A stretch of DNA of 25,889 nt from Macrostomum lignano (Eukaryota). A program made the translations under genes and the position numbers. Positions 1,115-25,889 of this stretch are shown in pieces. The stretch is taken from contig NIVC01001714.1 of assembly GCA_002269645.1 (NCBI GenBank), forward strand, positions 1 to 25,889, in the 5' to 3' direction. The notes under the pieces were generated by a model. That model was not told where the DNA came from and ran no database searches. It saw nothing but the letters and a program-made list of their open reading frames with translations. Position 1 is the stretch's first letter. Each line of letters begins with the position of its first letter.

Positions 1115-1222
1115 GTGAGACTTGATTTGAGTCTTGAAGGATGTGTGGGTCTAAACTTCGACACAAGATGTCAAATGGCACTGAGATTCTTACTTTTAAA
1201 GACACATAATGTGGCTCTTTGA

Positions 1223-1892
1223 GTCTAGGGTTGTGGGTTATTAGGTCTATAGGGTTGTGGATTATTAGGTCTATATGGTTGTGGGTTATTAGGTCTATAG
1301 GGTTGTGAGTTATTAGGGTCTATAAGGTTGTGGCTTATTAGGTCTATAGGGTTGTGGATTATTTGGTCTAAGATTGTGGTTTATTAGGTCTAAGGTTGTG
1401 GGTTATTAGGTCTGGTGTTGTGGTTTATTAGGTCTAGTTTTTTGGTTTATTAGGTCTGGTGTTGTGGTTTATTAGGTCTAAGGTTGTGGTTTATTAGGTC
1501 TGGTGTTTTGGTTTATTAGGTCTGGTGTTTGGTTTATTAGGTCTAGGGTTGTGACTGTGAGTAGGTCTAGGGTTGTGAGTAGATCTAGGGTTGTGAGTAG
1601 GTCTAGGGTTGTGAGTAGGTCTAGGGTTGTGAGTAGGTCTAGGGTTGTGAGTAGGTCTAGGGTTGTGAGTAGGTCTAGGGTTGTGAGTAGAGTAGGTCTA
1701 GGGTTGTGAGTAGGTCTAGGGTTGTGAGTAGGTCTAGGGTTGTGAGTAGATCTAGGGTTGTGAGTAGGTCTAGGGTTGTGAGTAGGTCCAGGGTTGTGAG
1801 TAGGTCTAGGGTTGTGAGTAGAGTAGGTCTAGGGTTGTGAGTAGGTCTAGGGTTGTGAGTAGGTCTAGGGTTGTGAGTAGGTCTAGGGTTAG
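1223..1892. repeat. Intronic minisatellite (PLOD intron 1)
   Basis: Degenerate ~21-23 nt GGTTGTGGTTTATTAGGTCT units grade into a homogeneous 18-nt GTAGGTCTAGGGTTGTGA array. Confidence 0.95.
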
Positions 1893-2009
1893 TCGGTGTT
1901 TGCAAGGTCATGCATATATTATTGTGCGAGTGTCATGGTTTATGGTCAAGGGCTCGTAAAGTGCGTCAAGGCCTGCACACTATGCACTCATTCACCTGTT
2001 CCAATGCAG

Positions 2010-2825
2010 GCGCCTGCTCAACTATGCCCCAATCACCGACTCAGACGATGACCAGCTGTTCCTGACTCGTGCCTTCCTCAACCCGGACTTGCGTCAGCGG
2101 CATCGCATGGCCTTAGACTACGACTGCTCAGTATTCCAGACGCTCAACGGAGCCCTGTCCGAGGTGTCGCTACGCTGGGACGACAGCGGCTTAGGCTATC
2201 TGCGCAACACTGTCACGGGTAGTTCTCCCGCCCTACTGCACGGCAATGGACCAATTAAAGCAGAATTTTGGCGATTAACAAACTATCTGGGCAGAGGCTG
2301 GTCAGACAGTCTGGGCTGTCAGCACTGCCCGCCAATGCCGCCGCCAACTGTGGCTCAACTGTTGCAGCGCCAATCAGAACTGCCCTACCTGACTGTCGGC
2401 GTGTTGCTAACCGATCCGGCGCCGTTTCCCGACCTGCTATTGGCTAGATTAGCCGAGCAGACTTATCCAAAGCAGCGAATTCATCTTCGTATCGATCTGG
2501 GACCGGGGGCCTCGGCTAGAAATGTTCATTTAGCCGTTAGAGATTTCATTGACAATCCTGTGCACGAGTATGCCAGTATTGTGCTGAATAATGCTTCGGA
2601 TAATTTAGCTTTCTCGCCGGTTTCTGCTAGACAGATACTGTTGGTTAATGAGTACAATTCAGATTTTATATTCTTTGTTGAGCCGATTGCTCAGCTAACT
2701 GGACGAGATGCTCTGACTCAGCTGGTGGCCGTTAATCGGTCTATTGTTGCGCCACTGCTAGTGCTGCCCGGTAAATTGTGGTCCAACTTCTGGGGCGCCT
2801 TGAATGCCGACGGATATTATGCCAG
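2010..2825 (+). CDS. PLOD: PLOD exon 2 (end of glycosyltransferase domain, accessory domain)
   Basis: Acceptor TGCAG|G at 2009. Reads RLLNYAPITDSDDDQLF, FQTLNG, LHGNG, GKLWSNFWGALNADGYYAR. Donor AG|GTGAGA at 2826. Phase 2 at both ends. Confidence 0.96.
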
Positions 2826-2833
2826 GTGAGAGG

Positions 2834-4290
2834 TCGGATAGCGGCTGTAGCCTTTAGAGGATTGGGGGCGGATAGCGGCTGCAGCCTTTGGAGAATTGGG
2901 AGCGGATAGCAGCCGAAGCTTTGGAGAATTGGGAGCGGATAGCAGCCGAAGCTTTTGGAGAATTGGGAGCGAATAGCAGCCGAAGCTTTTGGAGAATTGG
3001 GAGCGGATAGCAGCCGAAGCTTTGCAGAATTGGGAGCGGATAGCAGCCGAAGCTTTGGAGAATTGGGAGCGGATAGCAGCCGAAGCTTTTGGAGAATTGG
3101 GAGCGGATAGCGGCTGCAGCCTTTGGAGGATTGGGGGCGGATAGCGGCTGTAGCCTTGGAGGATTGGAGGCGGATAGCGGCTGCAGCCTTTAGAGGATTG
3201 GGGGGCGGATAGCGGCTGCAGCCTTTGCAGGATTGGGGGCGGATAGCGGCTGCAGCCTTTGGAGGATTGGGGGCGGATAGCGGCTGTAGTCTTTGGAGAA
3301 TTGAGGGCGGATAGCGGCTGCAGCCTTTGGAGGATTGGGGGCGGATAGCGGCTGCAGCCTTTGGAGGATTGGGGGCGGATAGCGGCTGCAGTCTTTGGAG
3401 GATTGGGGGCGGATAGCGGCTGCAGCCTTTGGAGGATTGGGGGCGGATAGTGGCTGCAGCCTTTGGAGAATTGGGGGCGGATAGTGGCTGCAGCCTTTGG
3501 AGAATTGGGGGCGGATAGCAGCCGAAGCTTTGGAGAATTGGGAGCGGATAGCAGCCGAAGCTTTGGAGAATTGGGAGCGGATAGCAGCCGAAGCTTTTGG
3601 AGAATTGGGAGCGGATAGCAGCCGAAGCTTTTGGAGAATTGGGAGCGGATAGCAGCCGAAGCTTTGGAGAATTGGGAGCGGATAGCAGCCGAAGCTTTGG
3701 AGAATTGGGAGCGGATAGCAGCCGAAGCTTTTGGAGAATTGGGAGCGGATAGCAGCCGAAGCTTTGGAGAATTGGGAGCGGATAGCAGCCGAAGCTTTTG
3801 GAGAATTGGGAGCGGATAGCAGCCGAAGCTTTGGAGAATTGGGAGCGGATAGCAGCCGAAGCTTTTGGAGAATTGGGAGCGGATAGCGGCAGTAGCCTTG
3901 GAGGATTGGGGGCGGATAGCGGCTGTAGCCTTTGGAGGATTGGGGGCGGATAGCGGCTGCAGCCTTTGGAGGATTGGGGGCGGATAGCGGCTGCAGCCTT
4001 TGGAGGATTGGGGGCGGATAGCGGCTGTAGTCTTTGGAGAATTGGGGGCGGATAGCGGCTGCAGCCTTTGGAGGATTGGGGGCGGATAGCGGCTGCAGCC
4101 TTTGGAGGATTGGGGGCGGATAGCGGCTGCAGTCTTTAGAGGATTGGGGGCGGATAGCGGCTGCAGTCTTTGGAGGATTGGGGGCGGATAGCGGCAGTAG
4201 CCTTGGAGGATTGGGGGCGGATAACGGCTGTAGCCTTTGGAGGATTGGGGGCGGATAGCGGCTGCAGTCTTTGGAGGATTGGAGGCGGAT
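2834..4290. repeat. Intronic minisatellite, 33-34 nt unit, two alternating variants (PLOD intron 2)
   Basis: Unit A GGAGGATTGGGGGCGGATAGCGGCTGCAGCCTTT, unit B GGAGAATTGGGAGCGGATAGCAGCCGAAGCTTT. Fills nearly all of the 1504-nt intron. Confidence 0.97.
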
Positions 4291-4329
4291 AGCGCCAACT
4301 CAAGTTAAACAAGTGCCGCACCCTTACAG

Positions 4330-4797
4330 ATCAGACGACTACTTAGACATTGTCAGCGACGCGCGCCGTGGCCTGTGGAACGTGCCTTACGTATCGGCAG
4401 CCTACCTAATCAATAGGCGAGCTGCTCAAATCCTACTCAAAGCTGGCGCATTCGATTCCAAACGATTAGCCGCTAGTGGAGTCGATTACGACATAGATTT
4501 CGCTTCAATTGCTAGATCGAAAAATGTGTTTATGCACGTGCTAAACACACTGCCATTCGGTCACCTGACTGACAACTCCAATACCACTAGGTTGCACGCT
4601 AGCAATGATCTGTGGGAGATTTGGGCTAATCCGGTGGATTGGGAGCACAAGTACATGCATCCGGATTATTGGCGATTCGCCTCCGACGATGCTCAGCTAG
4701 GGGATTTTGAGCAGCCCTGCCCGGATGTGTTTTGGTTGCCATTGGTTACGCCTTCGTTTTGCCACGATCTGGTTGCCGTTATGGAGTCGTTCGGAAG
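4330..4797 (+). CDS. PLOD: PLOD exon 3
   Basis: Acceptor TACAG|A at 4329. Reads SDDYLDIV, GLWNVPYVS, DLWEIWANPVDWE, EQPCPDVFW. Donor AG|GTGAGT at 4798. Confidence 0.96.
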
Positions 4798-4804
4798 GTG
4801 AGTA

Positions 4805-6030
4805 TTGGATTTTTACGACCTGGGATAGGAATTGGGATAATTGGGGATTTTTACGACCGGGGATAGGAATTGGGATAACTGGGATTTTTACGACCGGGGA
4901 TAGGAATTGGGATAATTGGGGTTTTTTACGACTGGGGATAGGAGCTGGGAAAATTTGGAATTTTTATGATTGCGGATAGGAGCTGGGAAAATTGGGGATT
5001 TCATGATTGGTGATAGGAATTGGGATAATTGAGAATTTTTATGATTGCGAATAGGAGCTGGGAAAATTTGGAATTTTTATGATTGCGGATAGGAGCTGGG
5101 AAAATTGGGGATTTCATGATTGGGGATAGGAACTGGGAGAATTGGGGATTTCATGATTGGGGATACGAGCTGGGAGAATTGGGGATTTTTAGGATTGGTG
5201 ATAGGAATTGGGATAATTGGGAATTTTTATGATTGCGAATAGGAGCTGGGAAAATTGGGGATTTCATGATTAGTGATAGGAATTGGGAAAATTAGGGATT
5301 TCATGATTGGGAATACGAGCTGGGAGAATTGGGGATTTTTATGATTGGGGATAGGAATTGGGATAATTGGGAATTTTGATGATTGAGGATAGGAGCTGGG
5401 AGAATCGGGGGTTTTTATGATTGGGGATAGGAACTAGGAGAATTGGGGATTTTTATGATTGGGGATAGGAACTAGGAGAATTGGGGATTTTTATGATTGG
5501 GGATAGGAGCTGGAAAAATTGGGGATTTTTATGATTGGGGATAGGAGCTGGAAAAATTGGGGATTTTTATGATTGGGGATAGGAGCTGGAAAAATTGGGG
5601 ATTTTTATGATTGGGGATAGGAATTGGGATAATTGGGAATTTTGATGGTTGGGGATAGGAGCTGGGAGAATCGGGGGGTTTTATGATTGGGGATAGGAAC
5701 TGGGAGAATTGGGGATTTTTATGATTGGGGATAGGAACTGGGAGAATTGGGGATTTTTATGATTGGGGATAGGAACTGGGAGAATTGGGGATTTTTATGA
5801 TTGGGGATAGGAACTGGGAGAATTGGGGATTTTTATGATTGGGGATAGGACCTGGGAGAATTAAGGATTTTTATGAATAAGGATAGGAACTGAGAGAATT
5901 GGGGATTTTTATGATTGGGGATAGGACCTGGGAGAATTAAGGATTTTTATGAATAAGGATAGGAACTGAGAGAATTGGGGATTTTTATGATTAAGGATAG
6001 GAACTGAGGACTTGTAAATTTGGGGATAGG
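4805..6030. repeat. Intronic G-rich minisatellite, ~38 nt unit (PLOD intron 3)
   Basis: Unit GGGGATAGGAACTGGGAGAATTGGGGATTTTTATGATT repeated with variants. Confidence 0.96.
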
Positions 6031-6118
6031 AGCTGCTAGTATTTAAGGATTTTAAATTCTGGGAAAGCAACTGTTATTCTGCTAATATTTCTACTAACAG
6101 CAGTAGTGCAATTCGCAG

Positions 6119-6569
6119 ATGGTCAGACGGCACAAACACAGATCCCCGGCTAGAAGGCGGCTACGAGAATGTGCCAACTCGCGACATTCACATGCGCCAA
6201 GTTGGCTGGGAGGCGCACTGGCTGCACTTTCTAGTAAAGTACATGCACCCAATCCAGCTAAAACTGTTCCAAGGCTACAGCGACAAGCCTTGGGCTCGAA
6301 TGAACTTCGTTGTTCGCTATCACCCCGAGGAGCAGAAGGAGCTTCGGCCGCATCATGACGCCTCAGACTACACTGTCAATCTGGCTCTCAATCAGGTTGG
6401 CGAGGACTTCGAAGGCGGCGGCTGCAGGTTTCCTCGCTACAACTGCTCCGTGATCGCTCCGCGACTAGGCTGGGCGTTTGTCCATCCCGGTAGGATCACT
6501 CACCTGCACGAGGGCCTGGAAGTCACTAAAGGTGTTCGTTACATCTTTGTCACCTTTGTTAATCCGTGA
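6119..6569 (+). CDS. PLOD: PLOD exon 4 (Fe(II)/2-oxoglutarate lysyl hydroxylase domain)
   Basis: Acceptor CGCAG|A at 6118. Reads [24 protein letters not shown] (HxD), THLHEGL (distal His), [12 protein letters not shown]-stop, matching the PLOD C-terminus. Confidence 0.97.
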
Positions 6570-8107: not shown

Positions 8108-8585
8108 ATGCACACGCTGCGCACCATACCTGGAGAGGAGCAGCCGTCACAGCAGCCAAACGAGCATCATCAGGCATTAAGCGACGATCAGGAGCCTCTG
8201 CTACCGCCTGCAGCAGCCAGTCAGCAGCAGGCATCGGCAGAATTGTTGCCAGCTGATAAATTCTACATCTCGCTACTGTTGTTCACCCTGCTGGGCGTTG
8301 GCAGCCTGTTGCCTTGGAATTTCTTCACTACGGCTAGAAGTTACTTCGAGTATAAACTGAGAAATGTCAGCAATATCACTGGCTGGCCGGATCAGCCCTG
8401 GATGCGGGACACTTTTGAAAGCTATTTGGCTGTGTTCAGCAATCTGCCAGGAGTTCTCTGTGTGTTGGCCAATGCGGCCGCTGCTGGCCGGGTCACTATT
8501 GCTGGCCGGATGGTTGTCTCTCTGAGCCTCATGTCCGCCATGTTCGCCTGCTCTGCTGCCTTTGTACTGGTGGATACCGACTGGC
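8108..8585 (+). CDS. ENT: Equilibrative nucleoside transporter (SLC29 family, ENT3-like), exon 1 of 3
   Basis: LLGVGSLLPWNFFTTA and FESYLAV are SLC29 signatures. N-terminal DQEPLL. Donor C|GTGAGC at 8586 (phase 1). Joined model 8108-8585, 9129-9446, 9991-10622 = 1428 nt = 475 aa plus stop, no frameshift. Confidence 0.93.
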
Positions 8586-8699
8586 GTGAGCTGCTGGGAC
8601 AGGGAAGGGGATTGTCTGCTGCTCACTGCACACTTGTGAACTCTCTGACACTTGAGTCTTGATAAGATGTACACTGTATGCATTTTATCGAGTCTGTGG

Positions 8700-9120
8700 A
8701 GCCTCTTCTCCACCCTGACTTACCCTCTCTTACCCTCTCTCACCCTCCTTACCCTCTCTCACCCTGATTCTTACCCTCTCTCAGCCTCTTCTCCCTCTAT
8801 TACCCTTCTTTCTCAATTACCCTCCTTACCCTCTCGCCCTTCTTACCGTTTCTCAACCTTTCCCACCCTCCTCTCCCTCTATCACCCCCCTCTCTCTCTC
8901 ACTTACTCTCCTTACACTTTCCCACCCTCCTTACCCTTTCTCACTCCACTTACCCTCTCTCTCACCCTTCCTCCCTCCATTCTCCCTCCTTCTCTTGCAG
9001 TTACCCTATTCTCCTTTTCTTAGCTTCCTCCATTACATTCCTCCACCCCTTACCACCTTACCTTTCTCCCCTTAACTTTCTTATCCACCTTACCCTCTTC
9101 TCACCCTCTTTACCCTCCTT
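8700..9120. repeat. Low-complexity polypyrimidine tract (ENT intron 1)
   Basis: ~420 nt built on CTTACCCTCTCT-like units, almost no G on the + strand. Confidence 0.85.
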
Positions 9121-9128
9121 GCCCGCAG

Positions 9129-9446
9129 ACCAGTCCGAGTTTTTCTGGGCCACCCTGGCCTCGGTGGCTCTGATGAGCGGCAGCGGTGCAGTGATGCAAG
9201 GCTCCTTATTCGGCTTAGCCGCCATGTTCCCCAAGCGCTACATCAACGCGGTGACTCTGGGCCAAGCCAGCGGCGGGGTGATAGCCGCTGTGGCCTATAT
9301 TATCAGCTTAGAGATTGGCAGCCACCCTCGATCTGCCGCTTTTCTCTACTTCCTATCGGCAACTGTCGTGTTGCTGATGTGTCTGGCAGCTTATCTACTG
9401 CTGCGGCGGCTGTCTTTTGTGCGGGATAGGCTGTGCAGAGCCAGGG
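9129..9446 (+). CDS. ENT: ENT exon 2
   Basis: Acceptor CGCAG|AC at 9128. Reads QGSLFGLAAMFPKRYINAVTLGQASGG and further hydrophobic helices. Donor G|GTGAGT at 9447 (phase 1). Confidence 0.93.
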
Positions 9447-9489
9447 GTGAGTTTCAAGTCAGCTAGTATCTCTTTAGCGTCAATCTTCT

Positions 9490-9925
9490 AGTTGAAAATT
9501 CCAAATCCCCAGTTAAAAATCCCAGATCTTCTACTTAAAAATCCCAAATCCCCAGTTAAAAATCCCAAATCCTCCAGTTAAAAATCCCAAATCCCCAGTT
9601 AGAAATCCCAAATCCCCAGTTTGAAATCCCAAATCCCCAGTTAGAAATCCCAAATCCCCAGTTAGAAATCCCAAATCCCCAGTTAGAAATCCCAAATCCC
9701 CAGTTAAAAATCCAAAATCACCAGTTAGAAATCCCAAATCCCCAGTTTGAAATCCCAAATCCACTAGTTGAAAATCCAGATCCCCTAGTTAAAAATCTCA
9801 AATCCCCAATCAAAAATCCCAAATCCCCAATTAAAATCCCAAATCCCCAGATAAAAATCCCAAATCCTTAGCTGGAAGTCCAGAGTCCCAAGTTAAAAAT
9901 CCCAAATCCCCAGTTAGAAATCCGA
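9490..9925. repeat. Intronic minisatellite, 21 nt unit (ENT intron 2)
   Basis: Unit AAATCCCAAATCCCCAGTTAG. Confidence 0.95.
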
Positions 9926-9990
9926 AATCCTCTGTTATCTTTGTACCATGAATCATACCTGTGCTAAAAATTCAATTCTCCAATCACCAG

Positions 9991-10622
9991 GCGCCGACCT
10001 GACTGATTCTTTGACGATACCAACGCCGACGCCGACACCGTCGCCGACGCTCCATGAGGCGCCCAATCGGCGCCGACTGTCCAACCGGCCCGCCTGGCGC
10101 CACCTGATCGGACCTGGCGGTGGCGCCTTCGCCGTGCTGACTATCACTCTGACCCTCTACCCGGCCCTGCTCAGCTCGCTGAGTCCCATGGCCGAACCGT
10201 GGCTGCTGTACTCGCCACTTTGCTGCTTCCTAGTTTACAACACTTTCGACCTGTTTGGCCGGTTCCTCACCTCCGCGGCGCCAACCCCGGGCGCCTGTGG
10301 GCGCGCACATTTCTCATTAATCACGCTGGCTCTGCTGCGGCTACTGTTTGTGCCGCTATTCCTGATGTGCAACTATTCGCTTGGTGGGGAACAGCGCAGA
10401 TTAATGCCAGTCTATTTCGCTTGGGACTGGGCGCCGCCGTTGCTAGTGTCAGCGTTCGGCCTTAGCAACGGTTATTTGTTTACTCTGTGTTTTATGCGCG
10501 CCTCGGAGCAGGCGCCAACTCACTTAGCCGAGTCGCATGGCGCTGTGATGAGCATGTGCGCTGTGGTTGGCTCCTCCACCGGGTCGGCGCTGTCGTTTCT
10601 GTTTACTGCCGGCACCAGGTGA
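9991..10622 (+). CDS. ENT: ENT exon 3 (TM7-TM11)
   Basis: Acceptor ACCAG|GC at 9990. Reads TLYPAL, FLVYNTFDLFGR, LRLLFVPLFLMCN, FGLSNGYL, GS..GSALS. Stop TGA 10620-10622. Confidence 0.92.
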
Positions 10623-10716: not shown

Positions 10717-11207
10717 ATGTACACACTCCTTTACCTCTGAGGTACACTCCCCCGATCTCTCTCCCCCAATGTGCACTCCCCCGATCCCTCCAATGTACAG
10801 GATCGCTCCCGACAACCCTTATTCCAATGTACACTCGCTACTCGCTACTGATAACTCCTTACCGCAATGTACATTTCACCGCCGATAATTCCTTACCCCC
10901 AATGTACACTCGCTGCCGATAACTCCTTACCCCCCAATCTACACTCTTTTGACAACTCCTTACCCCACTGTACATTCGCTGCCGATAACTCGCCCCAATG
11001 TACACTCGCCGCCAATAACTCCTTACCCCAATGTACACTCGCTGCCAATAACTCCTTACCCCAATGTACACTCGCTGCCAATAACTCCTTACCCCAATGT
11101 ACATTCGCTGCCGATGACTCGCCCCAATGTACACTCGCCGCCAATAACTCCTTACCCCAATGTACACTCGCTGCCAATAACTCCTTACCCCAATGTACAC
11201 TCGCCCA
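10717..11207. repeat. CCCAATGTACACTC-core minisatellite (33 nt and shorter units) downstream of the ENT stop
   Basis: Unit CCCCAATGTACACTCGCTGCCAATAACTCCTTA. Same core as 6649-6840. Confidence 0.93.
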
Positions 11208-13924: not shown

Positions 13925-14690
13925 CTACTTGATCAGCTCTCGCAGTCGAACCCTCGGTCTGCCACCGACGCCCGATCCGGCACCGCCGGGAGCTCCACCG
14001 ACGCCCGATCCGGCACCGCCGGGAGCTCCACCGACGCCGCCATCGTCTGCCAGACAGTCGAGCGATTTGGTACCAGTAGGGAACAACGGAGGTCTGCTGC
14101 TCGACTGACTCTGCGGCGGAGGCGGCGGAGGCGTGGCCTCCAGCAGAGTGTCCGCAGCGATGCTCTGTGCACCCTCGCTGCCATCGCCTTCAGCGCTCGA
14201 CATTCCCGTGACGCTGATCAACCGGTTGACCTCGGCCTCGACAATGTCTCGCACTTTGTCCAGCATAGCGTCGGTCTCGGTCTCTTGCTTCGGCAGGCAC
14301 TGGCGCATCATCTCTTCGCGACATTTGCGCAGGCCGAACGCCTGGAACAGCAGGAACTGGGTGACCAGCTTCTGGCGGAAGGAGCCGCCGCCGCCGCCTC
14401 CACCAGCGTGTCTGGTGCGACACCGACAGTTCTTGTGGCACACTCGGCGGCAGTAGCTCTTGAGCAATAGAAAAAATTTTCTAACTAGATCGAACACGTT
14501 CAGGGGCGGCGGCAGGCTGGACCGAGTTTCGAATTCTTCAATTAGATCGTGGCGTTCGAACTGCCAGAGACCTTTGCTGCGCGAGTCGATGGTCTCGATT
14601 GTCTTGCTGAACATGGCGACGATGAGATTCAGCAGCAGGATCTCCGTGACGATCACGTAGAGAGGCAGGATCAGATAGGGCACCAGGTAC
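13925..14690 (-). CDS. Ankyrin-repeat TRPM-like cation channel, copy 1, exon 4 of 4 (S6, TRP box, coiled coil, tail)
   Basis: Acceptor CACAG|G at 14691. Reads YLVPYLILPLYVIVTEILLLNLIVAMF, LWQFER (TRP box), LPPPLNVF. Stop TAG 13927-13925. Joined model 21478-20749, 20556-18343, 15701-15335, 14690-13925 = 4077 nt = 1358 aa plus stop, no frameshift. Confidence 0.93.
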
Positions 14691-14799
14691 CTGTGGTTCC
14701 GTTGAGATTTGTACATAGGATTACTCTCTGTCTAATCAGAGTACTAATGTCCAATGGGGATTAACATTTGCTGCAGAGAGCTTACCTTTGCTTGGGGAT

Positions 14800-15290
14800 T
14801 CGGATTCCCTTCCTCTCTCCCTCAGACCCATGGCTAAATCCTAGAGATTCCCTTCTTCTCTCCCCCCTCAGACCCATGGCTAAACTCTGGCGGATTCCCT
14901 TTCTTCCTCCCCCTCAGACCCACGGCTAAACCCCCAGGGATTCCCTTCCTCTCTCTCTCCCTCAGACCCATGGCTAAACATTGAGGGATTCCCTTCCTCT
15001 CTCTCTCCCTCAGACCCATGGCTAAATCGTGGGGGATTCCCTTCCCCTCTCTCCCCCTCAGACCCACGGCAAAACCCCGGGGGATTCCCTTCCTCTCTCT
15101 CCCTCAGACCCATGGCAAAACCTTGGGGGATTCCCTTCCTCTCTCTCCCTCAGACCCCTGGCTAAACCTTGGGGGATTCCCTTCCTCTCTCTCCCTCAGA
15201 CCCATGGCAAAACCTTGGGGGATTCCCTTCCTCTCTCTCCCCCTCAGACCCATGGCAAAACCCTGGGGGATTCCCTTCCTCTCTCCCAGG
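14800..15290. repeat. Intronic minisatellite, ~46-48 nt unit (TRP copy 1 intron 3)
   Basis: Unit CCCTCAGACCCATGGCAAAACCTTGGGGGATTCCCTTCCTCTCTCT. Confidence 0.95.
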
Positions 15291-15334
15291 GTTTTGGAAG
15301 TCCCAGGACCAACAATGACTGGAATCTCACTCAC

Positions 15335-15701
15335 CGGCCAAAATGATGCGGACAACTGCTGGTATTGTTCTCCCGCGTTTCGTAGATCATTTCGCAAGAA
15401 TCGTCGCCCATAATGGTATCCAGACTGTACTCCCCAACCATGCTGTAGAAGCAGATCTTGAGCATGCCCAGCAGCACGTGAACCTTGTTCAATTGACCAT
15501 AATTCCAGGCCCTGTATCCGTTTGGATAGAGCAAGCTGTGCATAAGCACTCCGAATCCCAGGATGAAGATGAACAGAATCAATAGAAATGGCAGCAGATC
15601 CTTAGTGATCATCTTTGCAATCATTTTCAGTTTGGGCCCGAGATTCTCCAGCACTGTGGAAATGTACAGCAGCCGGATCCAGTACAGGGTGCAGCAGATG
15701 C
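15335..15701 (-). CDS. TRP copy 1 exon 3 (S4, S5, pore helix, filter, turret)
   Basis: Acceptor TTGCAG|GC at 15702. Reads ICCTLYWIRLLYIS, LGPKLKMIAKM, FGVLMHSLLYPN, FYSMVGEY. Donor CG|GTGAGT at 15334. Phase 1 in, phase 2 out. Confidence 0.94.
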
Positions 15702-15799
15702 CTGCAAATATTGTTAAATAAAGATTATAGCAGTGCGCTACACTAAATACTACTGATTGAAGTTCAATTTGAGTAGCTATGTAAAGACATTTTCTGATT

Positions 15800-16950
15800 T
15801 TAGCGCCTAAATGAGATACTTTCAGACATCTATTTGAGATACTTTTAGTCGCCAAGTTGAGACACCTTTAGGCACCGAATTGGGATACTTTTAGGCACCT
15901 TTTTGAGATAATTTTAGGCGCCAATTTGAGATAATTTTAGGCACCTTTTTGAGATAATTTTAGGCGCCAATCTGAGATACTTTTAGGCACCAATTTGAGA
16001 TACTTTTAGGCACCAAGTTGAGATACTTTTAGGCGCCAATTTGAGATACTATACTTTAGGCACCTATTTGAGATAATTTTAGGCGCCAATTTGAGATACT
16101 ATACTTTAGGCACCTATTTGAGATAATTTTAGGCGCCAATTTGAGATACTATACTTTAGGCACCTATTTGAGATAATTTTAGGCACCTATTTGAGATAAT
16201 TTTAGGCGCCAATTTGAGATAATTTTAGGCACTTTTTTGAGATAATTTTGGGCACCTATTTGAGATAATTTTCGGCACCTATTTGAGATAATTTTAGGCG
16301 CCAATCTGAGATACTTTTAGGCACCAATTTGAGATAATTTTAGGCACTAAGTTGAGATACTTTTAGGCACTAAGTTGAGATACTTTTAGGCACCAAGTTG
16401 AGATAATTTTAGGCGCCAATTTGAGATACTATACTTTAGGCACCTATTTGAGATAATTTTAGGCGCCAATTTGAGATACTTTTAGGCGCCAATTTGAGAT
16501 AATTTTAGGCACCTATCTGAGATAATTTTAGGCGCCAATTTGAGATACTATACTTTAGGCACCTATTTGAGATAATTTTAGGCGCCAATTTGAGATACTT
16601 TTAGGCGCCAAGTTGAGATAATTTTAGGCACCAATTTGAGATACTATACTTTAGGCACCTATTTGAGATAATTTTAGGCGCCAATTTGAGATAATTTTTG
16701 GCGCCAATTTGAGATAATTTTAGGCGCCAATTTGAGATAATTTTAGGCGCCAATTTGAGATAATTTTAGGCACCTATCTGAGATAATTTTAGGCGCCAAT
16801 TTGAGATACTTTTAGGCGCCAAGTTGAGATAATTTTAGGCACCAATTTGAGATACTTTTAGGCGCCAATTTGAGATAATTTTAGGCACCAAGTTGAGATA
16901 CTTTTAGGCACCTATTCGAGATACTTTAAGGCACCTATTTGAGGTACTTT
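15800..16950. repeat. Intronic minisatellite, 23 nt unit with 28 nt variants (TRP copy 1 intron 2)
   Basis: Unit TTTTAGGCGCCAATTTGAGATAA, variant with ...GAGATACTATAC... Confidence 0.96.
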
Positions 16951-17554
16951 TAGGCACCACTTGTACAGCTTGAAATCCCAATAATCTCATACATACAAGC
17001 TCTGTCCCAAGCAAGATCCTAGTACCAAATACCAAAATGTCCTCTAATCTCTTGAGACAAGTCGGCAAACAGGCTTCCACTTAAAAACCAAAGCGCTAAC
17101 TAGCTGGATTGCTTTCCGCATGCATTTGAACTGCGAAATTTATTGCTATGCCAAATTCAGCCGTGATGTTCAATTGCGCATTCTCAGTGAAGCAGCTTCT
17201 TATAATCTATATGCATATTCATAGCAACCCTTCCGCCGGAAACCAGTACACATGCAGTAGCTCTTTAGTGCAATTTATGCAAATTTGCCAATGCCCAGAA
17301 CTATTGGAATGCATAGCGTACTGCATTTCCACTCCAAGTTAGGGTTAGACAGACGAAACAGTTCTTAACTGCAAGAGCTCCTGCTACATCATCTATCTGT
17401 GGGTTCCTACCATTTTTACTGCTACAGAACACTGCCACACTTGAAGAGAAGAAAGAGTTTTGCTACTTTTTGGTCGCTGAACAACAAAAAAATAAGCAAA
17501 AACTTAAATGACGACACTCCTTGCGCGGAATAGAAAGATTTTTTATTGGCCTTT

Positions 17555-18320
17555 TAGTAGACATTCTACAGACGTTCTACAAACATTCTACAGACACTTT
17601 AGAGACAATCTACACATATTTTAAACATTCTAGAGACATTCTACACAGATACACGATAGAGACATTCTACAGACATTATAATGACATTCTACAGATATAC
17701 TATAGAGACATTCTAGAGACATTATAAAGACATTCCACAGATATACTATAGAGACATTCTAGAGACATTATAAAGACATTCTACAGATATACTATAGAGA
17801 CATTCTACAGACATTATAATGACATTCTATAGATATACTATAGAGACATTCTAGAGACATTATAAAGACATTCCACAGATATACGATAGAGACATTCTAC
17901 AGACATTATAAAGACATTCTACAGATATACTATAGAGACATTCTAGAGGCATTATAAAGACATTCTACAGATACACGATAGAGACATTCTAGAGACGTTA
18001 TAAAGACATTCTACAGATATACTATAGAGACATTCTACAGACATTATAATGACATTCTATAGATATACTATAGAGACATTCTAGAGACATTATAAAGACA
18101 TTCCACAGATATACTATAGACATTCTAGAGACATTATAAAGACATTCTACAGATGCACGATAGAGACATTCTAGAGACATTATAAAGACATTCTACAGAT
18201 GCACGATAGAGACATTCTAGAGACATTCTACAGGCATTCTACAGATACAAGATTGAGACATTATAGAGACATTATAAAGATTCAAGAGACACTCTAGAGA
18301 AATTGGATAGAGACATTCTC
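17555..18320. repeat. Second intronic minisatellite, ~46 nt higher-order unit of AGACATT subunits (TRP copy 1 intron 2)
   Basis: Unit ATAAAGACATTCCACAGATATACTATAGAGACATTCTAGAGACATT. Runs to within ~22 nt of the donor site. Confidence 0.93.
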
Positions 18321-18342
18321 AAAACAGTACCGAAGAACTCAC

Positions 18343-20556
18343 TCAGGCTGATCCTCGCTGTGTACCAGGCCTTGTCCTCAAAGTCCCGCATCATGTCGCT
18401 CCACTCCTGCGAGTATTTGATCTCGCTGATGCGAATCGAGAAGCCGACCACCCCACAGGTCAGAGCTGTGATGTCGATGATGTTCCATTTGCTTCTGAAG
18501 TACGACTTGATGTCGTCGTGCTCCGTGTATTGGGCTATCTCGCCAACCTCTTCTAGCAGCATGCCGGAGAGAATGGCGTACACAATGATCTCCTTGATGC
18601 TCAGCTCGTACTGGAAGTCCATCAGCAGCAGATAGGACAGCAGAGCCACCAGGAGCACGTGCGAAGCCACGTGGTAGCGGAACTTCACGGCCGGGGTATC
18701 GTAAAACTCCGAGATCAGCTGGAAGAATCGCCGGAACCGTCTGAGCGCTCGGGTGCCGATCGAGCTCAAAATCGAGTGCTCATCCTGTTCGTCAGCCTTG
18801 TGCAGCAGCGAGGAGGCGTCCGACTTCTCCGACACCTTCGAGTTCGGACGGGCCATCTGTCGGAACTCGATCTCCTCTATTGGCGCCTCCTTTTTCTGCT
18901 GATTCTCCTTGTGCAGAGAGGAGGACGAGTGAGCTTGCTGCTTGGCCTCCTTGGCGAGCTTCTGCCCAGCTTGAGTTCCCAGCGAATGAGCGTTGGAGCC
19001 GCGTCGCCGAGTGATCTGGTCTTCCAGACTGTCAGCGGACTGGTCCGCTGGCAGCGGCAGTTTCGGCAGCAAATGGAATTTTTCGTAAATCGGCGTCGTC
19101 TCATCCTCCTGGACGAAGCTGCGCTCTTCGTGGCGACGCCTGGTGCGCATCTCCTTCTCGTCGTAGTAGAGCAGCACCAGCGGCACCAGGAAATTGAGCG
19201 GAATGGCGCCCATCCAAATGATAATCTCGCGCAGGATGGGGTTCATGTGCAGCAGCGATCGGAACCACATCTTGTCGAGGGCGCGCTGGCACAGCTCGCT
19301 CTGCAGGAACCTGGAGCACTCGTTGGAGGCGGCCAGCTTCACGCAGGAGATGCCGCCGTAGGACTCTAGTGGTCTCAGCAGGTAGTCGACACTGACAGAG
19401 CGATTGTACGAAGTATCGATTGAGTTGACCTTTTCGACAACTTTTCGAGCAAATTTCTCGCAGGTCAGAGCTAAAGCCTCGATTTCTTCCTCTTCCACGA
19501 CAAGTTCCTGATTCATTGGGAAAGTTCTCAGCAGGGCGGCGCAGAACAGGGACAGCGGAACGACGTCGAACTTCTCCTGGCGAAGTAGCAGCTCGGTGAG
19601 GGACAGCCGGCCGGACAGAACTGACCAGACTGGCAGGGTGGTCATCGGGTGACGCATGTACTGAATGTTGGGATTGAATCCCAGGTAGTACGGCTGCAGG
19701 TTGTAGCAAGACAGCTCGCTCCCGTAGTACTTAGATAGTTTGTCGTGCCGAACTCTGTTTTGCTCAACGAATCGGGATTTGAAGTGCATGACGATACCGT
19801 TGACTTCTCTCTCTGGAGCTTGGATGTACAGCGAGTCGAGATGATCCTCGATCAATAGCGACACCTTCGACCAGAGCACTCCGCAGTACATAATTCGCTC
19901 GAGCATCACAGCGTCCTCTCTGAACAGGACGTAGTGCACAATGTTCTCTACGATCTTGACCAGCACATCGCGATCATCCTCCATGATCAAGTAATGAATA
20001 TCCTCAGTTTGCAACAGCTGGACGATGACCTCCTTGAACTCCATGAGGTCGATTCGATCGTCGTGCTGCAGTTTGGCGCACAGAGTTTCCTTTTCAACCT
20101 CGCTGATGTCCTTGATCTCCATTGTGCACTCGTTGAATTCGTTGTCTACGTGAGAGAGAAATTCGAGGTACTTTTCGAAGTGCTTCTCGTGCGACAGTGC
20201 CATCAGGTTTCTCGCCGTGACGCCCTCGGTCATGCGGATTGAGTAGAATCGAGCGAAATCGTTAAGCAGCATCGGATTGTTGAGCTGCAGGATGAGGTCA
20301 ATGACTGTCTTGCCGCTGTCCGCTGGCACGTCAACCAGCGTTCCCTTGCTCAATAGCAAGTCTACTATCTGTCGATTCTGATTCAGCACAGCAATGTGCA
20401 GCGCTGTTTTGCCTTCGTGACCGCGCACGTTGAGCACCTCGCTGCTGAGATGCGGCGCCAGGCGTTTTACCGCAACGAGCGAGTCCTCGAGGCAGGCGCG
20501 GTGCAGCGGCGTGTTGCCCTGAGCGTCCAGCACGTGCAGCTCGGCGCCGCAGTAGT
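18343..20556 (-). CDS. TRP copy 1 exon 2 (ankyrin repeats, helical linker, MHR4-like region, pre-S1, S1-S3)
   Basis: Acceptor CCGCAG|AC at 20557. Ankyrin motifs GNTPLH and GKTALH. TRPM MHR4-like LPVWSVL, SCVKLAA...FLQSELCQRALDKMW, then EFYDTPAVKF and KWNIID. Donor A|GTGAGT at 18342. 2214 nt, phase 1 to phase 1. Confidence 0.94.
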
Positions 20557-20748
20557 CTGCGGTTTCAAACAAACCATTTAGTAAGTCATTTTAAGATTGA
20601 AAATTTATATTTTTATATGTATGCAAGCTTGCGAGACATATACTGGAAGTGGCGATCGCCATTAGGAGTCCTTGAAATTTATGGCCTCCCTAAGGGGAAG
20701 CGGGAAAGCTTTGCCCCCACAAAAGGAGCGCTGCGAATCTGCACATAC

Positions 20749-21478
20749 CAAGCAATGTGTCCAGCATTTTCTTGTCCGCACTAGCGCAGGCCACGTGCAG
20801 CGGATAGTCGGACAGTCCCCGTCCGCTTATGGACGACGGCAGAGGAATGTCTGGACTGGCACCCAAACTGTGCAGGTATCGAATAGTTCGATAGTGACGC
20901 TTCTTCAAGGCGTAGTGCAGCGGCACCATGCCTTCAGCGTTTCGCCTGTTGAAGTCGACCGACAATTCCTTCAGCAGATCCAGCACCTCGAACTTGCCAT
21001 CTTCCGCAGCTAGATCGGCTACTGTTTTGCACCTGTTGACTTCCGTATACACGCCTTTGATGGTTAGAAGCCGCTTGAGCTGCTCCAGTCGGTTCGCCTT
21101 GTAAGCGTCCAACACGATGGGATCAAAATCGCTGGTTGTTGCCGCGGTCGATCGGTTCGACCGGAAACTCGGAAAGTTTCTTCCTACCGCTGCGGATGAC
21201 GGCGCGGCACCAGCCGGAAAAGGCGCTGCCGGGACTCGAGAAGTCGGCCTAGACGACGACAAAGGCGCCCCGGCGCCACCTCCAGCCGTCGAAAAGTTTT
21301 CAAACCGTCGGATTCGCCATTGCAACGGCGCTGAACCGACCGGGTAAAAATTTTGGCCTCCGTGGAGGACATTCAGTTGAGTTCGTCGACTCGGTTGGTC
21401 AAAATCGTGGCGCTCTCGAGACACCTGGCGCGAGTACTGAAACCGTTGCTGCTCGCTGCTGATGTTGAACCCAGACAT
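20749..21478 (-). CDS. TRP copy 1 exon 1 (disordered N-terminus, first ankyrin repeats)
   Basis: ATG at 21478. Ankyrin motifs KTVADLAA, GMVPLHYA, DYPLHVAC. Donor G|GTATGT at 20748 joins exon 2 in phase (TLLD-YCGAEL). Confidence 0.9.
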
Positions 21479-22655: not shown

Positions 22656-24071
22656 TACAAGCGTAGGAACGGGGGGACAGTGGGGCTATGGCCCCCCACT
22701 TTTTAAAATGTTTAAACGTAAAATGTAGACTTTTTGTTTATTTTTGTTTTTTGCTGCTTTGCATGAATGCATTTTGCTGCAGGGCGACAAAACATAGCAC
22801 CTGCGGCGCTAAAATGAGTGCCTGCGGCGCTAAAATGAGTGCCTGCGGCGCTAAAATGAGTGCCTGCGGCGCTAAAATGAGTGCCTGCGGTGCTTAAATG
22901 AGTGCCTGCGGCGCTAAAATGAGTGCCTGCGGTGCTAAAATGAGTGTCTGTGGCGCTAAAATGAGTGCCTGCGGTGCTTAAATGAGTGCCTGTGACGCTA
23001 AAATGAGTGCCTGCGGCGCTAAAATGAGTGCCTGCGGCGCTAAAATGAGTGCCTGCGGCGCTAAAATGAGTGCCTGTGGTGCTAAAATGAGTGCCTGCGG
23101 CGCTAAAATGAGTGTCTGTGGTGCTAAAATGAGTGTCTGTGGCGCTAAAATGAGTGTCTGTGGCGCTAAAATGAGTGCCTGCGGCGCTAAAATGAGTGCC
23201 TGCGGTGCTTAAATGAGTGCCTGTGGCGCTAAAATGAGTGCCTGCGGCGCTAAAATGAGTGCCTGCGGCGCTAAAATGAGTGCCTGTGGTGCTAAAATGA
23301 GTGCCTGCGGCGCTAAAATGAGTGTCTGTGGCGCTAATATGAGTGTCTGTGGCGCTAAAATGAGTGCCTGCGGCGCTAAAATGAGTGCCTGCGGCGCTAA
23401 AATGAGTGCCTGCGGTGCTTAAATGAGTGCCTGCGGCGCTAAAATGAGTGTCTGTGGTGCTAAAATGAGTGTCTGTGGCGCTAAAATGAGTGTCTGTGGC
23501 GCTAAAATGAGTGCCTGCGGCGCTAAAATGAGTGCCTGCGGTGCTTAAATGAGTGCCTGTGGCGCTAAAATGAGTGCCTGCGGCGCTAAAATGAGTGCCT
23601 GCGGCGCTAAAATGAGTGCCTGTGGTGCTAAAATGAGTGCCTGCGGCGCTAAAATGAGTGCCTGCGGCGCTAAAATGAGTGCCTGCGGCGCTAAAATGAG
23701 CACCTGCGGCGCTAAAATGAGTGCCCGCGGTGCTAAAATGAGTGCCTGCGGTGCTAAAATGAGTGTCTGTGGCGCTAAAATGAGTGTCTGTGGCGCTAAA
23801 ATGAGTGTCTGTGGCGCTAAAATGAGTGTCTGTGGCGCTAAAATGAGTGTCTGTGGCGCTAAAATGAGTGTCTGTGGCGCTAAAATGAGCACCTGCGGCG
23901 CTTTATAAAATGAGTGCTGACAAGACGGATTCTGAAAATAATCGGTACATGATAATGTGCATTTTCCATATATAAAAAATCTAACTCGACAGGGCGTGCG
24001 CCCTGTGCGCACCCCCCAAATCCGCCACTGAACCTGCCCCCCCCACTTTTTGAAACGTTCCTACGCCTATG
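22656..24071. mobile_element. Non-autonomous TIR DNA transposon (MITE-like) with target-site duplication and an internal tandem array
   Basis: Left end TACAAGCGTAGGAAC (22656-22670) versus reverse complement of the right end CATAGGCGTAGGAAC (24057-24071): 12/15 match. Flanking direct repeat GAAACAGC at 22648-22655 and 24072-24079 (extends to 10 nt, GAAACAGCTA). No transposase ORF. Confidence 0.8.
22797..23902. repeat. 21-nt minisatellite (~52 units) inside the MITE-like element
   Basis: Unit GCCTGCGGCGCTAAAATGAGT. Source of the spurious MSACGAK ORFs. Confidence 0.97.
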
Positions 24072-24218: not shown

Positions 24219-24855
24219 CTAGCGCCACATGGTCTGCAGTCGCAGAGCCTGTCTCCATCTGGTCTGGGCGAGACTGGGCCTTGGCAGCCTTGTCCTCGGC
24301 AAATTGCCTAACAGAGTGTTGGCTGTGATGGCTCTCGGCGGGTCGCTGTCGCTGTCGCTGTCACCTTCGCTGCCGCGGTCGCTACCCGCCGGTTGCTGCT
24401 TCAGCTTTGTCAACTCGGACTCGACAATTTTTCTCATCTTCATCAGCATCTTCTCGGCTTCGGTCTCCTGTTTCGGCAGACTCTGCTGCATCAGCCTCAG
24501 CCGGTTATTGCGCAGGCTGAGCGCTTGGAACAGCAGAAACTGCAGCACGACGCGGCGGCTAAAAACGGTCTCGACTTCGTTGACACAGCTGCAGAGGACG
24601 CATCTGGAATGCTGAGTCAGTCTCCGGAGAAGCCTGAGCAGCTTGTAGAATAGATCGAACACGTTGAGTGGCGGCGGAAGACTCGAACGAGTCTGGAACT
24701 CCATAACGAGATCGTGGCGTTCGAACTGCCACAGATCGGTGCTGCGCGAGTCGATGGTCTCGATTGTCTTGCTGAACATGGCGATGATGAGATTCAGCAG
24801 CAAGATCTCCGTGACGATCACGTAGAGAGGCAGGATCAGGTAGGGCACCAGGTAC
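24219..24855 (-). CDS. TRPM-like channel, copy 2 (tandem paralog), last exon
   Basis: Acceptor TGCTAACAG|G at 24856. Reads YLVPYLILPLYVIVTEILLLNLIIAMFSKTIETIDSRS, LWQFER, LPPPLNVF, nearly identical to copy 1, then diverges. Stop TAG 24221-24219. Confidence 0.9.
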
Positions 24856-24939
24856 CTGTTAGCAGGATTTTAGAATATTGGGTAAATAATCCTTAAACTA
24901 AACTCTGAAAATTCTAAATATCCAGTGCCACCAACTCAC

Positions 24940-25305
24940 CGTCCGATTTTGTGCGGACAGTTGCCTTCATTTAGAGTATAATTTTGGTACACATTTTCGC
25001 CACGAATCGTCCCCAATAATGGTATCCAGACTGTACTCCCCAACCATGCTGTAGAAGCAGATCTTGAGCATGCCCAGCAGCACGTGAGTACTGCTGATAC
25101 GAGCCGAGTTCCAGGCCTTGTACCCGTTGGGGTACAGCAAGCTGTGCATCAGCACCCGAATCCCAGGATGAAGATGAACAGAATCAATAGAAATGGCAGC
25201 AGATCCTTGGTGATCATCTGGGCGATCATTCTTAGCTTGGGCCGAGATTCTCCAGCACATTCGAAATGTACAGCAGCCGAATCCAGTAGAGGGTGCAGCA
25301 GATGC
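24940..25305 (-). CDS. TRP copy 2 penultimate exon (S4-pore); three apparent single-base frameshifts
   Basis: Same splice positions as copy 1 exon 3 (acceptor TTGCAG|GC at 25306, donor CG|GTGAGT at 24939). 366 nt versus 367 nt in copy 1. Missing base near 25239-25241, missing base near 25155-25157, extra base near 25000-25001. Sequencing error is favoured but a pseudogene is not excluded. Confidence 0.8.
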
Positions 25306-25394
25306 CTGCAAGAAACAATTAGCAGTTTCCTTTATATACTACTTATAAATAGAACGTTTTTTATCAGTAGTGAAATCAATTCATCTTTGTGGAG

Positions 25395-25745
25395 GTAGAC
25401 ATTGGTAGATTGTGTTTAATGGTTTTTTGAGTTTAACAATGGTAGATTGTGTCTATGGTTCTGTAGTCAGACAATGGTAGATTAAGTCTATGCTTTTGGA
25501 TATAGAAAATGGTAGATTGTGTCTATAGTTTTGGAGGTAGACAATGGTAGATTGTGTCTATGATTTTGGAGGTAGACAATGGTAGATTGTGTCTATAGTT
25601 TTGGAGGTAGACAATGGTAGATTGTGTCTATAGTTTTGGAGGTAGACAATGGTAGATTGTGTCTATGGTTTTGGAGGTAGACAATGGTAGATTGTGTCTA
25701 TAGTTTTGGAGGTAGACAATGGTAGATTGTGTCTATAGTTAAGAG
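25395..25745. repeat. Intronic minisatellite, 35 nt unit (TRP copy 2)
   Basis: Unit TTTTGGAGGTAGACAATGGTAGATTGTGTCTATAG. Confidence 0.95.
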
Positions 25746-25769
25746 TCAAACAATGATTGATTTTCTTAC

Positions 25770-25889
25770 TAAGAAAAATTCTGGCTGAATACCAAGCCGA
25801 GTCCTCGAAGTCTCGCATCATGTCGGACCACTCGCGAGTTGTGGCTTGATCTCTACCAGGCGAATCACAAACCCGTCGCACCTGACAGC
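25770..25889 (-). CDS. TRP copy 2, 3' end of the S3-containing exon (truncated by the window edge)
   Basis: Reads EWSDMMRDFEDSAWYSARIFL versus copy 1 EWSDMMRDFEDKAWYTARISL. Donor A|GTAAG at 25769, same position and phase. Another frameshift near 25833-25844 (GFVIRLVEIK is in a different frame). Confidence 0.82.

Follow-up and report, generated by a model that had tools for sequence, protein, structure and literature searches.

Which kind of TRP channel carries a stack of ankyrin repeats ahead of a body of TRPM type? The question is raised by a gene of the flatworm Macrostomum lignano (assembly GCA_002269645.1), which lies at 13925-21478 on the minus strand of contig NIVC01001714.1; the entire contig, 25,889 nucleotides, was analysed and is referred to as the window. 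An original prediction made from the letters alone had proposed a possibly undescribed TRP subfamily, in which ankyrins have replaced the melastatin homology regions (MHR) 1/2. We read the locus as an intact gene for a TRP cation channel subunit of the flatworm 'TRPM-like' clade typified by TRPM_MCLZ, and put the probability of this reading at about 0.8.

Flatworm TRPM_MCLZ channels have no MHR1/2-SLOG, carry N-terminal ankyrin repeats and end in a short C-terminus without an enzyme domain, and 'TRPM-like' has been proposed as the name of the group (PMC10788528; PMC11731825; PMC12861061). The Schistosoma mansoni protein Sm.TRPM_MCLZ (Smp_333650), formerly annotated as TRPM7-like, is the target of meclonazepam, which evokes currents and Ca2+ signals with this channel in HEK293 cells (Park et al. 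2024, PMC10788528). It is 1,380 amino acids (aa) long and lacks NH2-terminal MHR1/2 or SLOG domains (Sprague et al. 2024, PMC11731825). A catalogue of TRPM_MCLZ orthologues lists 63 from trematodes, cestodes and monogeneans (Rohr et al. 2026, PMC12861061).

Gene model and domain architecture

Four open reading frame (ORF) blocks are joined through canonical GT...AG introns with agreeing phases, giving a coding sequence of 4077 nt that encodes 1358 aa and a stop, with zero internal stops. The product, here called the window protein, matches the GenBank entry 'hypothetical protein BOX15_Mlig019746g1 [Macrostomum lignano]' (P0001) at 100% identity from end to end, and the annotated gene range, 13925-21478, is the interval first proposed. 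Junctions, phases, stop-free coding sequence and identity to the annotated protein bear out the uninterrupted 1358-aa spliced ORF of the original prediction. All the motifs it quoted are present: LPVWSVL, SCVKLAA...FLQSELCQRALDKMW, EFYDTPAVKF, LGPKLKMIAKM, FGVLMHSLLYP, VGEY and LWQFER...LPPP. The exons are as follows (a slash marks the splice site).

20749-21478, minus strand: exon 1, aa 1-243 and the first base of codon 244; ATG at 21478, donor G/GTATGT (...CTTG/GTATGT); low-complexity N-terminus (aa 1-118) and ankyrin repeats 1-4a
18343-20556, minus strand: exon 2, aa 244-981; acceptor CCGCAG/AC, donor CTGA/GTGAGT; later ankyrin repeats, helical linker, MHR4, disordered pre-S1 insert, S1-S3 and the start of S4
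15335-15701, minus strand: exon 3, aa 982-1104 (part); acceptor TTTGCAG/GC, donor GGCCG/GTGAGT; remaining S4, S4-S5 linker GPKLKMIAKM, S5, pore helix and filter FYSMVGEY
13925-14690, minus strand: exon 4, aa 1104-1358 and stop; acceptor CCACAG/G; S6, TRP helix LWQFERHDLIEEF, LPPP and a C-terminal tail without an enzyme domain

Minisatellites fill introns 2 and 3. As read from the genomic sequence, M. lignano has at this locus an intact protein-coding gene with four exons. A gene-model artefact or a pseudogene, in which ankyrin and channel neighbours were wrongly fused or a duplicate is decaying, would find some encouragement in the Macrostomum assembly, which is repeat-rich and partly polyploid, in an adjacent tandem copy with frame-breaking 1-bp indels, and in the fact that the four-exon model at the locus rests on genomic sequence. 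However, ankyrin repeats, the TRPM2-like domain, MHR4 and S1-S3 share one unbroken 766-aa ORF in exon 2, so that the ankyrin-channel fusion is independent of splice prediction; a fused-gene artefact was rejected because this single ORF covers both halves. The coding sequence is stop-free, every intron is GT-AG with fitting phases, and functionally critical residues are kept. More than 10 paralogues show this domain order too, as do trematode, cestode and transcript-like contigs, and the Sm.TRPM_MCLZ cDNA has been PCR-amplified and sequence-confirmed, with the annotated sequence functional on expression (PMC10788528). We regard an artefact or pseudogene as extremely unlikely.

Across the whole protein, Pfam finds ankyrin repeats over aa ~126-319 (Ank_2 5e-24, Ank_4 8e-23, Ank_3 2e-18, Ank 2.5e-16), the 'TRPM2-like domain' PF25508 at aa 493-661 (34.5 bits against a gathering score of 27, E 3e-8) and Ion_trans at aa 878-1142 (4e-15). 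LSDAT/SLOG, TRP_2 (PF08344), NUDIX and alpha-kinase have no Pfam match at E<=1, and the Pfam TRPM tetramerisation domain has none in the window protein. By eye, six ankyrin repeats and a capping half-repeat can be counted over aa 119-347. The parts of the protein lie as follows.

20282-21124, minus strand: ankyrin-repeat domain, aa 119-335, ~6 repeats and a capping half-repeat, split by intron 1 (20557-20748)
19664-20281, minus strand: helical linker, aa 336-541, MHR3-like by fold only
19187-19663, minus strand: TRPM-type MHR4, aa 542-700 (LPVWSVLSGR..., SCVKLAASNECSRFLQSELCQRALDKMW), based on PF25508, PDB phmmer and hhalign
18773-19114, minus strand: disordered insert between MHR4 and pre-S1, aa ~725-838
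14525-18694, minus strand: channel domain, exons 2-4 with introns 2 and 3 inside, based on Ion_trans, PDB matches and AlphaFold2 helices
minus strand, within the channel domain: S1 aa 865-890 (YHVASH His pair), S2 897-923, S3 933-954, S4 972-998
minus strand, within the channel domain: S4-S5 linker aa 1003-1012, S5 1017-1039, pore helix and filter 1054-1076 (VGEY), S6 1103-1131, TRP helix 1135-1159
13928-14524, minus strand: C-terminal cytosolic tail, aa 1160-1358, comprising a stretch rich in Cys and Arg, a run of Gly, a helical segment and an end rich in Pro and Gly

With a family alignment of 17 sequences, AlphaFold2 gave a model of aa 110-1205 (mean predicted local distance difference test, pLDDT, 75; predicted template modelling score, pTM, 0.59). 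It contains the stack of repeats, a linker that is helical throughout, a disordered insert, and six transmembrane helices together with the pore and TRP helices. The ankyrin domain, matched by Pfam Ank_2/3/4/5 and Ank and by an ankyrin-consensus probe over aa 130-318, is modelled as helix-turn-helix pairs with a pLDDT of ~85-90. In the insert the pLDDT falls below 50 (model residues 616-729), and its columns are unconserved in the family alignment. The tail holds a perfect 33-bp tandem repeat (x2.3, 13962-14038, exon 4) that encodes GGAPGGAGSGV twice; the expansion is recent, keeps the reading frame and lies where the paralogues show no conservation.

Whether a SLOG domain could be hidden in front of MHR4 was considered. 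The helical linker has no detectable sequence match to the MHR3 of canonical TRPMs, and PDB and profile searches matched nothing upstream of aa ~530. Only ~65 residues separate the last ankyrin repeat from the would-be start of the TRPM2-like Pfam profile, which leaves no space for a SLOG domain of ~250 aa. A separate AlphaFold2 model of aa 335-709 (pLDDT 84, pTM 0.80) returned TRPMs as all 50 of its top 50 Foldseek matches in the PDB, with 274-457 alignment columns against a query of 375 residues. A cryptic SLOG in aa 336-541 was rejected: neither sequence nor profile gives a signal for it, the stretch is not long enough, and the all-helical fold predicted there resembles TRPM cytosolic helical domains. 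According to the models, the protein lacks MHR1/2 (SLOG) but has probably kept a helical domain like MHR3/4.

The layout first proposed, ~6-7 ankyrin repeats, a helical linker and a TRPM-like body, is confirmed by the Pfam, profile and AlphaFold2 evidence. The reported lack of SLOG, TRP_2 and NUDT9-H or kinase domains agrees with the Pfam result given above. That ankyrins replaced MHR1/2 is a fair description, as homology to SLOG-bearing TRPMs in hhalign starts only at aa 542.

TRP family of the channel body

With phmmer against the PDB, aa ~780-1190 match the Nematostella TRPM2-like channel nvTRPM2 (2e-38), TRPM8 (~1e-35), TRPM2 (8e-35), TRPM1 (3e-33) and TRPM3 (~2e-31), and down to 1e-24 all matches are TRPMs. 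When aa 340-740 are searched alone, only the MHR4 of TRPM2, TRPM8, TRPM1 and nvTRPM2 is found, plus one non-significant match (E 0.25). In hhalign, the family alignment matches ten canonical SLOG-bearing TRPMs with a probability of 100% and an E of 8e-78, over a stretch that runs from aa 542, the start of MHR4, to ~aa 1188, beyond the TRP helix and LPPP; nothing upstream is aligned. The TRPM-type body of the original prediction thus holds, with phmmer, hhalign and Foldseek on the AlphaFold2 models all returning TRPMs. The complete melastatin region of a canonical TRPM is lacking, as MHR4 alone is detectable by sequence and SLOG is absent; a TRPM-type transmembrane domain and a TRP box (W-K/x-F-Q/E-R; LWQFER here) are present.

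A divergent TRPN/NompC-like, TRPC or TRPA channel, with a superficial likeness to TRPM, would be suggested by the whole-protein phmmer and Foldseek PDB lists, which are topped by Drosophila NOMPC, and by a full-length homologue search that gave many TRPN1 and ankyrin-repeat proteins and only 3 true relatives. These NOMPC and TRPN1 matches arise from the ankyrin repeats, however, and an affinity to TRPN/NompC was rejected because the NOMPC match runs through them. Over the transmembrane region, TRPMs score 98-135 bits against 32.5 bits for the NompC transmembrane domain. MHR4 matches TRPMs only, with PF25508 above its gathering score. TRPC channels have TRP_2 after ~4 ankyrin repeats, and the window protein has no match to TRP_2 (PF08344, E<=1). 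In a transmembrane tree (below), a check named at the outset, the window protein does not group with TRPN, whose TRPN1 sequences form the outgroup with 100% bootstrap. A channel of TRPN, TRPC or TRPA type is very unlikely.

TRPS (soromelastatin) is the sister family of TRPM and occurs in lophotrochozoans (PMC7306681; PMC13143021), and a TRPS member that lost SLOG and Nudix, rather than a TRPM derivative, would therefore also have to be considered. Several 'TRPM7-like' annotations elsewhere have been moved to TRPS (PMC13143021), and our tree was built without TRPS references. Against this, the closest non-ankyrin relatives in the tree are flatworm SLOG-bearing proteins, which lie among mollusc and brachiopod sequences named TRPM2 or TRPM-like, and Rohr et al. 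put TRPM_MCLZ beside other flatworm TRPMs (PMC12861061). The features that define TRPS, namely SLOG and Nudix and no ankyrin (Himmel 2020, PMC7306681), are not those that Pfam finds here. Membership in TRPS was rejected on architecture alone, the tree containing no ced-11-like or other TRPS sequences; we consider this origin unlikely.

Relationship to TRPM_MCLZ and evolutionary route

The window protein as a TRPM derivative can be placed further by its closest relatives. In an exhaustive HMMER search with aa 340-1200 against 1.84 billion representatives, many Macrostomum paralogues come first (824 to ~300 bits), followed by Opisthorchis viverrini/felineus (334 bits), two Logan contigs and Schistocephalus solidus ('TRPM7' in UniRef), and then by Dicrocoelium dendriticum, Fasciolopsis buski ('TRPM7') and Protopolystoma xenopodis. 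From ~207 bits down, SLOG-bearing flatworm TRPMs are interleaved, and canonical TRPMs come after them. By Pfam, all scanned full-length or near-full-length family members have Ank and Ion_trans and none has SLOG; PF25508 is scored by all Macrostomum members and by no parasite or Logan member. The architecture of the window protein is that of the published group: ankyrins with MHR1/2-SLOG absent, and a TRPM-type body with a short C-terminus that lacks an enzyme domain.

The parasite proteins can be identified by residues of the drug pocket in the VSLD (voltage-sensor-like domain). In Sm numbering the conserved pocket consists of H827 and H831 in S1, E868 in S2, R943 in S4 and Y1117 in the TRP helix (PMC12861061), and the S1 histidines are absent from all other schistosome TRPMs (Rohr et al., PMC12861061). 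Dicrocoelium reads 'LHSIFH' in S1, 'R..Y' in S4 and 'YSERT' in the TRP helix, which is the published trematode TRPM_MCLZ signature, while the cestode protein reads 'FHSIFH', 'R..F' and 'YQDKS', the cestode variants L826F, H946F, R1120K and T1121S (PMC12861061). Among the parasite proteins found here, the signature is accordingly LH...H / R..Y / Y..RT in trematodes and FH...H / R..F / Y..KS in cestodes. The Opisthorchis gene models have two Ion_trans stretches, which fits the exon 3a/3b duplication published for Opisthorchiida. In the window protein these motifs are 'YHVASH', 'R..Y' and 'FETRS'; pocket positions one to four are H, H, E and R, and the position of Y1117 is F, as it also is in Gyrodactylus (PMC12861061). 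The S1 H/H pair occurs in the window protein and in 17 of the 22 clade members; most SLOG-TRPMs have N/Y. A Logan contig (DRR639838, locus L002, 6849 bp) carries a gene at 1001-4219 with an uninterrupted 1072-aa ORF of Ank and channel, and forms with P0128 and P0278 a separate TRPM_MCLZ sub-branch in which the S1 pair is Y/Y, not H/H.

A tree built by neighbour joining from 144 transmembrane regions (312 columns, Kimura-corrected distances, 200 bootstraps, rooted on TRPN1) contains a Macrostomum-only clade (n=10, bootstrap 100%) and a TRPM_MCLZ clade of trematode, cestode and monogenean parasites and Logan sequences (n=12, bootstrap 86%). In reciprocal phmmer searches, Dicrocoelium and Schistocephalus TRPM_MCLZ match the Macrostomum Ank proteins at 154-225 bits, most at 187-225, whereas the best SLOG-TRPM match of the parasite proteins reaches 169 bits. 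Judged from these sequences, the gene would belong to a Macrostomum expansion co-orthologous to TRPM_MCLZ, with good character support and moderate phylogenetic support.

Several observations weigh against this placement. The Macrostomum clade and parasite TRPM_MCLZ are united at a neighbour-joining bootstrap of only 56%, the sister group of flatworm SLOG-TRPMs (including Ank+SLOG forms) has only 31%, and the deep nodes lie at 15-56%. The tree is a neighbour-joining and not a maximum-likelihood tree, without TRPS, TRPC, TRPA or TRPV references. No Schistosoma sequence is in the comparison, the link being made via trematode and cestode orthologues that are known by published diagnostic residues. 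The start codon and first 118 aa are without support, the gene being known here from its sequence alone, and the MHR3-like call for aa 336-541 stems from weak Foldseek E-values (1e-3 to 2e-2). The pocket also departs from that of Sm.TRPM_MCLZ at Y864 (M), H946 (Y) and Y1117 (F), as well as at T1121 (S); because of the first three changes, the ligand specificity predicted for the window protein surely differs from that of Sm.TRPM_MCLZ.

The low bootstrap of the union with parasite TRPM_MCLZ could also be taken to favour a previously undescribed subfamily apart from all named clades, and so could the general literature on TRP evolution. There, neither TRPM nor TRPS has ankyrin repeats (Himmel et al. 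2020, PMC7306681; no platyhelminths sampled), and MHR1/2, MHR3 and MHR4 are stated to occur in all TRPM/TRPS members (a 2026 survey without flatworms, PMC13143021). Yet the architecture has been published as TRPM_MCLZ / 'TRPM-like' (PMC12861061; PMC11731825; PMC10788528), and the window protein has in common with that clade the S1 His pair, the reciprocal-best relationships and the domain order. A separate new subfamily is quite unlikely, and the proposal of one fails because the architecture already belongs to a named clade, an outcome that the original prediction itself had listed as refuting it. The gene is a new, uncharacterised member of the known TRPM_MCLZ / 'TRPM-like' family. The clade is a counter-example to both published generalisations, that TRPM/TRPS always have MHR1/2 and never ankyrin repeats, and general papers on TRPM/TRPS evolution overlook it.

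The Ank-only architecture is found in at least 10-11 Macrostomum clusters that are pairwise <50% identical (Mlig019746, 030565, 023207, 012389, 033956/026745, 022043/007691, 004154, 011337, 008432/029514 and 000356), and at one locus per parasite species among the sequences found here. Expansion of TRPMs in free-living flatworms is not itself new, because planarians have about 21 (PMC12421698). No description of the ankyrin-type TRPM clade in free-living flatworms was found in the searchable literature, in which the presence and expansion of the TRPM_MCLZ family in such a flatworm appear to be unreported.

The 3' part of a tandem TRPM-like gene lies upstream of the main gene at 24219-25839 (minus strand) and is cut by the contig end at 25889. 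Its pieces comprise a homologue of aa 959-982, an exon 3 with 88% DNA identity and an exon 4 with 56% aa identity, the latter encoding S6 and the TRP box ('LWQFERHDLVMEF...LPPP') with a diverged tail. Compared with the intact gene, exon 3 has frame-breaking 1-bp indels, two of which are deletions at short G runs; the copy is either a pseudogene or carries long-read assembly errors.

Some flatworm TRPMs, Macrostomum P0140 and P0292 and the Clonorchis sinensis 'TRPM2' P0152, combine Ank_2, LSDAT/SLOG, a full TRPM2-like domain and Ion_trans. By domain content, this Ank+SLOG architecture is intermediate between the canonical TRPM and the Ank-only TRPM_MCLZ type. Since ankyrin repeats and SLOG occur together in these proteins, it suggests an order of events in a flatworm TRPM, in which ankyrins were gained N-terminal to SLOG first and the deletion of SLOG came later; the co-existing forms point to a stepwise domain swap. 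A wider scenario, to which we give somewhat less than an even chance, is that an ancient SLOG-less Ank 'TRPM-like' lineage of early rhabditophoran age spans Macrostomorpha and Neodermata. It would have come about by the addition of ankyrins before SLOG and the subsequent deletion of SLOG. With one locus in each sampled parasite, it would have radiated, with tandem duplication, into at least 10 divergent groups in free-living Macrostomum, a sensory-type expansion and in effect a TRP subfamily missed by general classifications.

As an anthelmintic target, TRPM_MCLZ has been validated. Macrostomum lignano, a free-living flatworm, is a tractable transgenic model, and its co-orthologues could give a genetic system for what ankyrin-TRPM channels sense and for the role of an ankyrin ring in place of the nucleotide-binding SLOG. 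Variation of the VSLD drug pocket could be followed in them as well.

Predicted channel properties and comparison with known systems

From its sequence, the window protein would be a subunit of a non-selective TRP cation channel that is tetrameric and probably permeable to Ca2+. The canonical TRPM 'G-E' filter (FYSMVGEY) is kept in it and in all Macrostomum paralogues, and the TRPM Ca2+-site pattern of the VSLD reads E-E-N-D, with Q replaced by E. The stack of ~6-7 ankyrin repeats is predicted to sit directly on the retained helical MHR3/4-like domain, presumably as the bottom cytosolic layer and a surface for protein interaction or allostery. Without SLOG and NUDT9H, the channel would have neither of the nucleotide (ADP-ribose-type) sites found in TRPM2-like channels.

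If Sm.TRPM_MCLZ and TRPM8 are a guide, the TRP helix and the voltage-sensor-like cavity of S1-S4 would be expected to mediate gating, and by analogy with these two and TRPM_PZQ, small-molecule or lipid ligands would act in the S1-S4/TRP-helix cavity. The pocket of the window protein combines the S1 His...His pair, the S4 Arg and the TRP-helix Arg with Tyr at the key S4 position and Phe for Tyr in the TRP helix. Schistosome channels are less sensitive to meclonazepam when the S4 '946' position is Tyr (PMC12861061), which by analogy predicts a low meclonazepam sensitivity of the window channel.

Two further genes, both on the plus strand, precede the channel gene in the window.

604-6569, plus strand: exons of a PLOD-type procollagen-lysine hydroxylase/glycosyltransferase, ORFs 604-1077, 2089-2829, 4271-4801 and 6171-6569; Pfam GT_PLOD 1e-26 and 3e-17, 2OG-FeII_Oxy 7e-9; long minisatellites fill its introns
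8108-10622, plus strand: exons of an equilibrative nucleoside transporter (SLC29/ENT); Nucleoside_tran 1.5e-29 on ORF 9948-10622, 'LPWNFFTTA' motif in ORF 8108-8662

Minisatellite arrays are very dense across the window, in introns and between genes, with periods of 18-46 bp, 10-52 copies and 84-93% matches. Examples are found at 1223-1890, 2835-4294, 4807-6006, 9490-9937, 10840-11205, 14813-15285, 15812-16959, 17625-18280, 22800-23902 and 25390-25740. These arrays account for an extreme local GC skew (up to 0.83) and for long spurious repeat ORFs on both strands.

Four known systems can be set beside the window protein. TRPN/NompC is alike in having an ankyrin N-terminus on a group-1 TRP channel and is the top whole-protein PDB match. 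It differs in its 29 repeats against ~6-7 here, in having no MHR4, in a transmembrane similarity well below that of TRPMs and in its position as the outgroup of the tree. Canonical TRPMs (TRPM2/8-like and TRPM1/3/6/7-like), among which nvTRPM2 (6co7) and TRPM8 give the best matches by sequence in the PDB, have the same TRP box W-x-F-E-R, G-E filter and E/N/D of the Ca2+ site. Unlike them, the window protein has a true ankyrin stack, no SLOG/MHR1-2 and an MHR3 that is unrecognisable by sequence, and a Ser follows the TRP-helix Arg where Pro is usual.

The flatworm Ank+SLOG TRPMs belong, like the window protein, to a flatworm TRPM lineage with N-terminal ankyrins and form a weakly supported sister group, but LSDAT/SLOG and a TRPM2-like domain of full length are kept in them, their repeats number only ~3 and their length is 1700-1890 aa. 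Differences from TRPM_MCLZ itself, beyond the pocket residues given above, are an identity of ~22-25% to the parasite orthologues over the post-ankyrin body, a channel domain spread over three exons instead of the single exon of the parasites, a canonical 'VGEY' filter where the pore sequence of the parasite orthologues has diverged, and the many paralogues in Macrostomum. In its ankyrins in place of MHR1/2-SLOG, its TRPM-type MHR4, VSLD, pore and TRP helix, and its lack of NUDT9H or kinase, the window protein is like TRPM_MCLZ. The two are also close in size (1358 against 1380 aa) and exon number (four against three), the S1 His...His pair, S2 Glu, S4 Arg and TRP-helix Arg are kept, and the window protein groups with the TRPM_MCLZ orthologues in the tree and in reciprocal searches.

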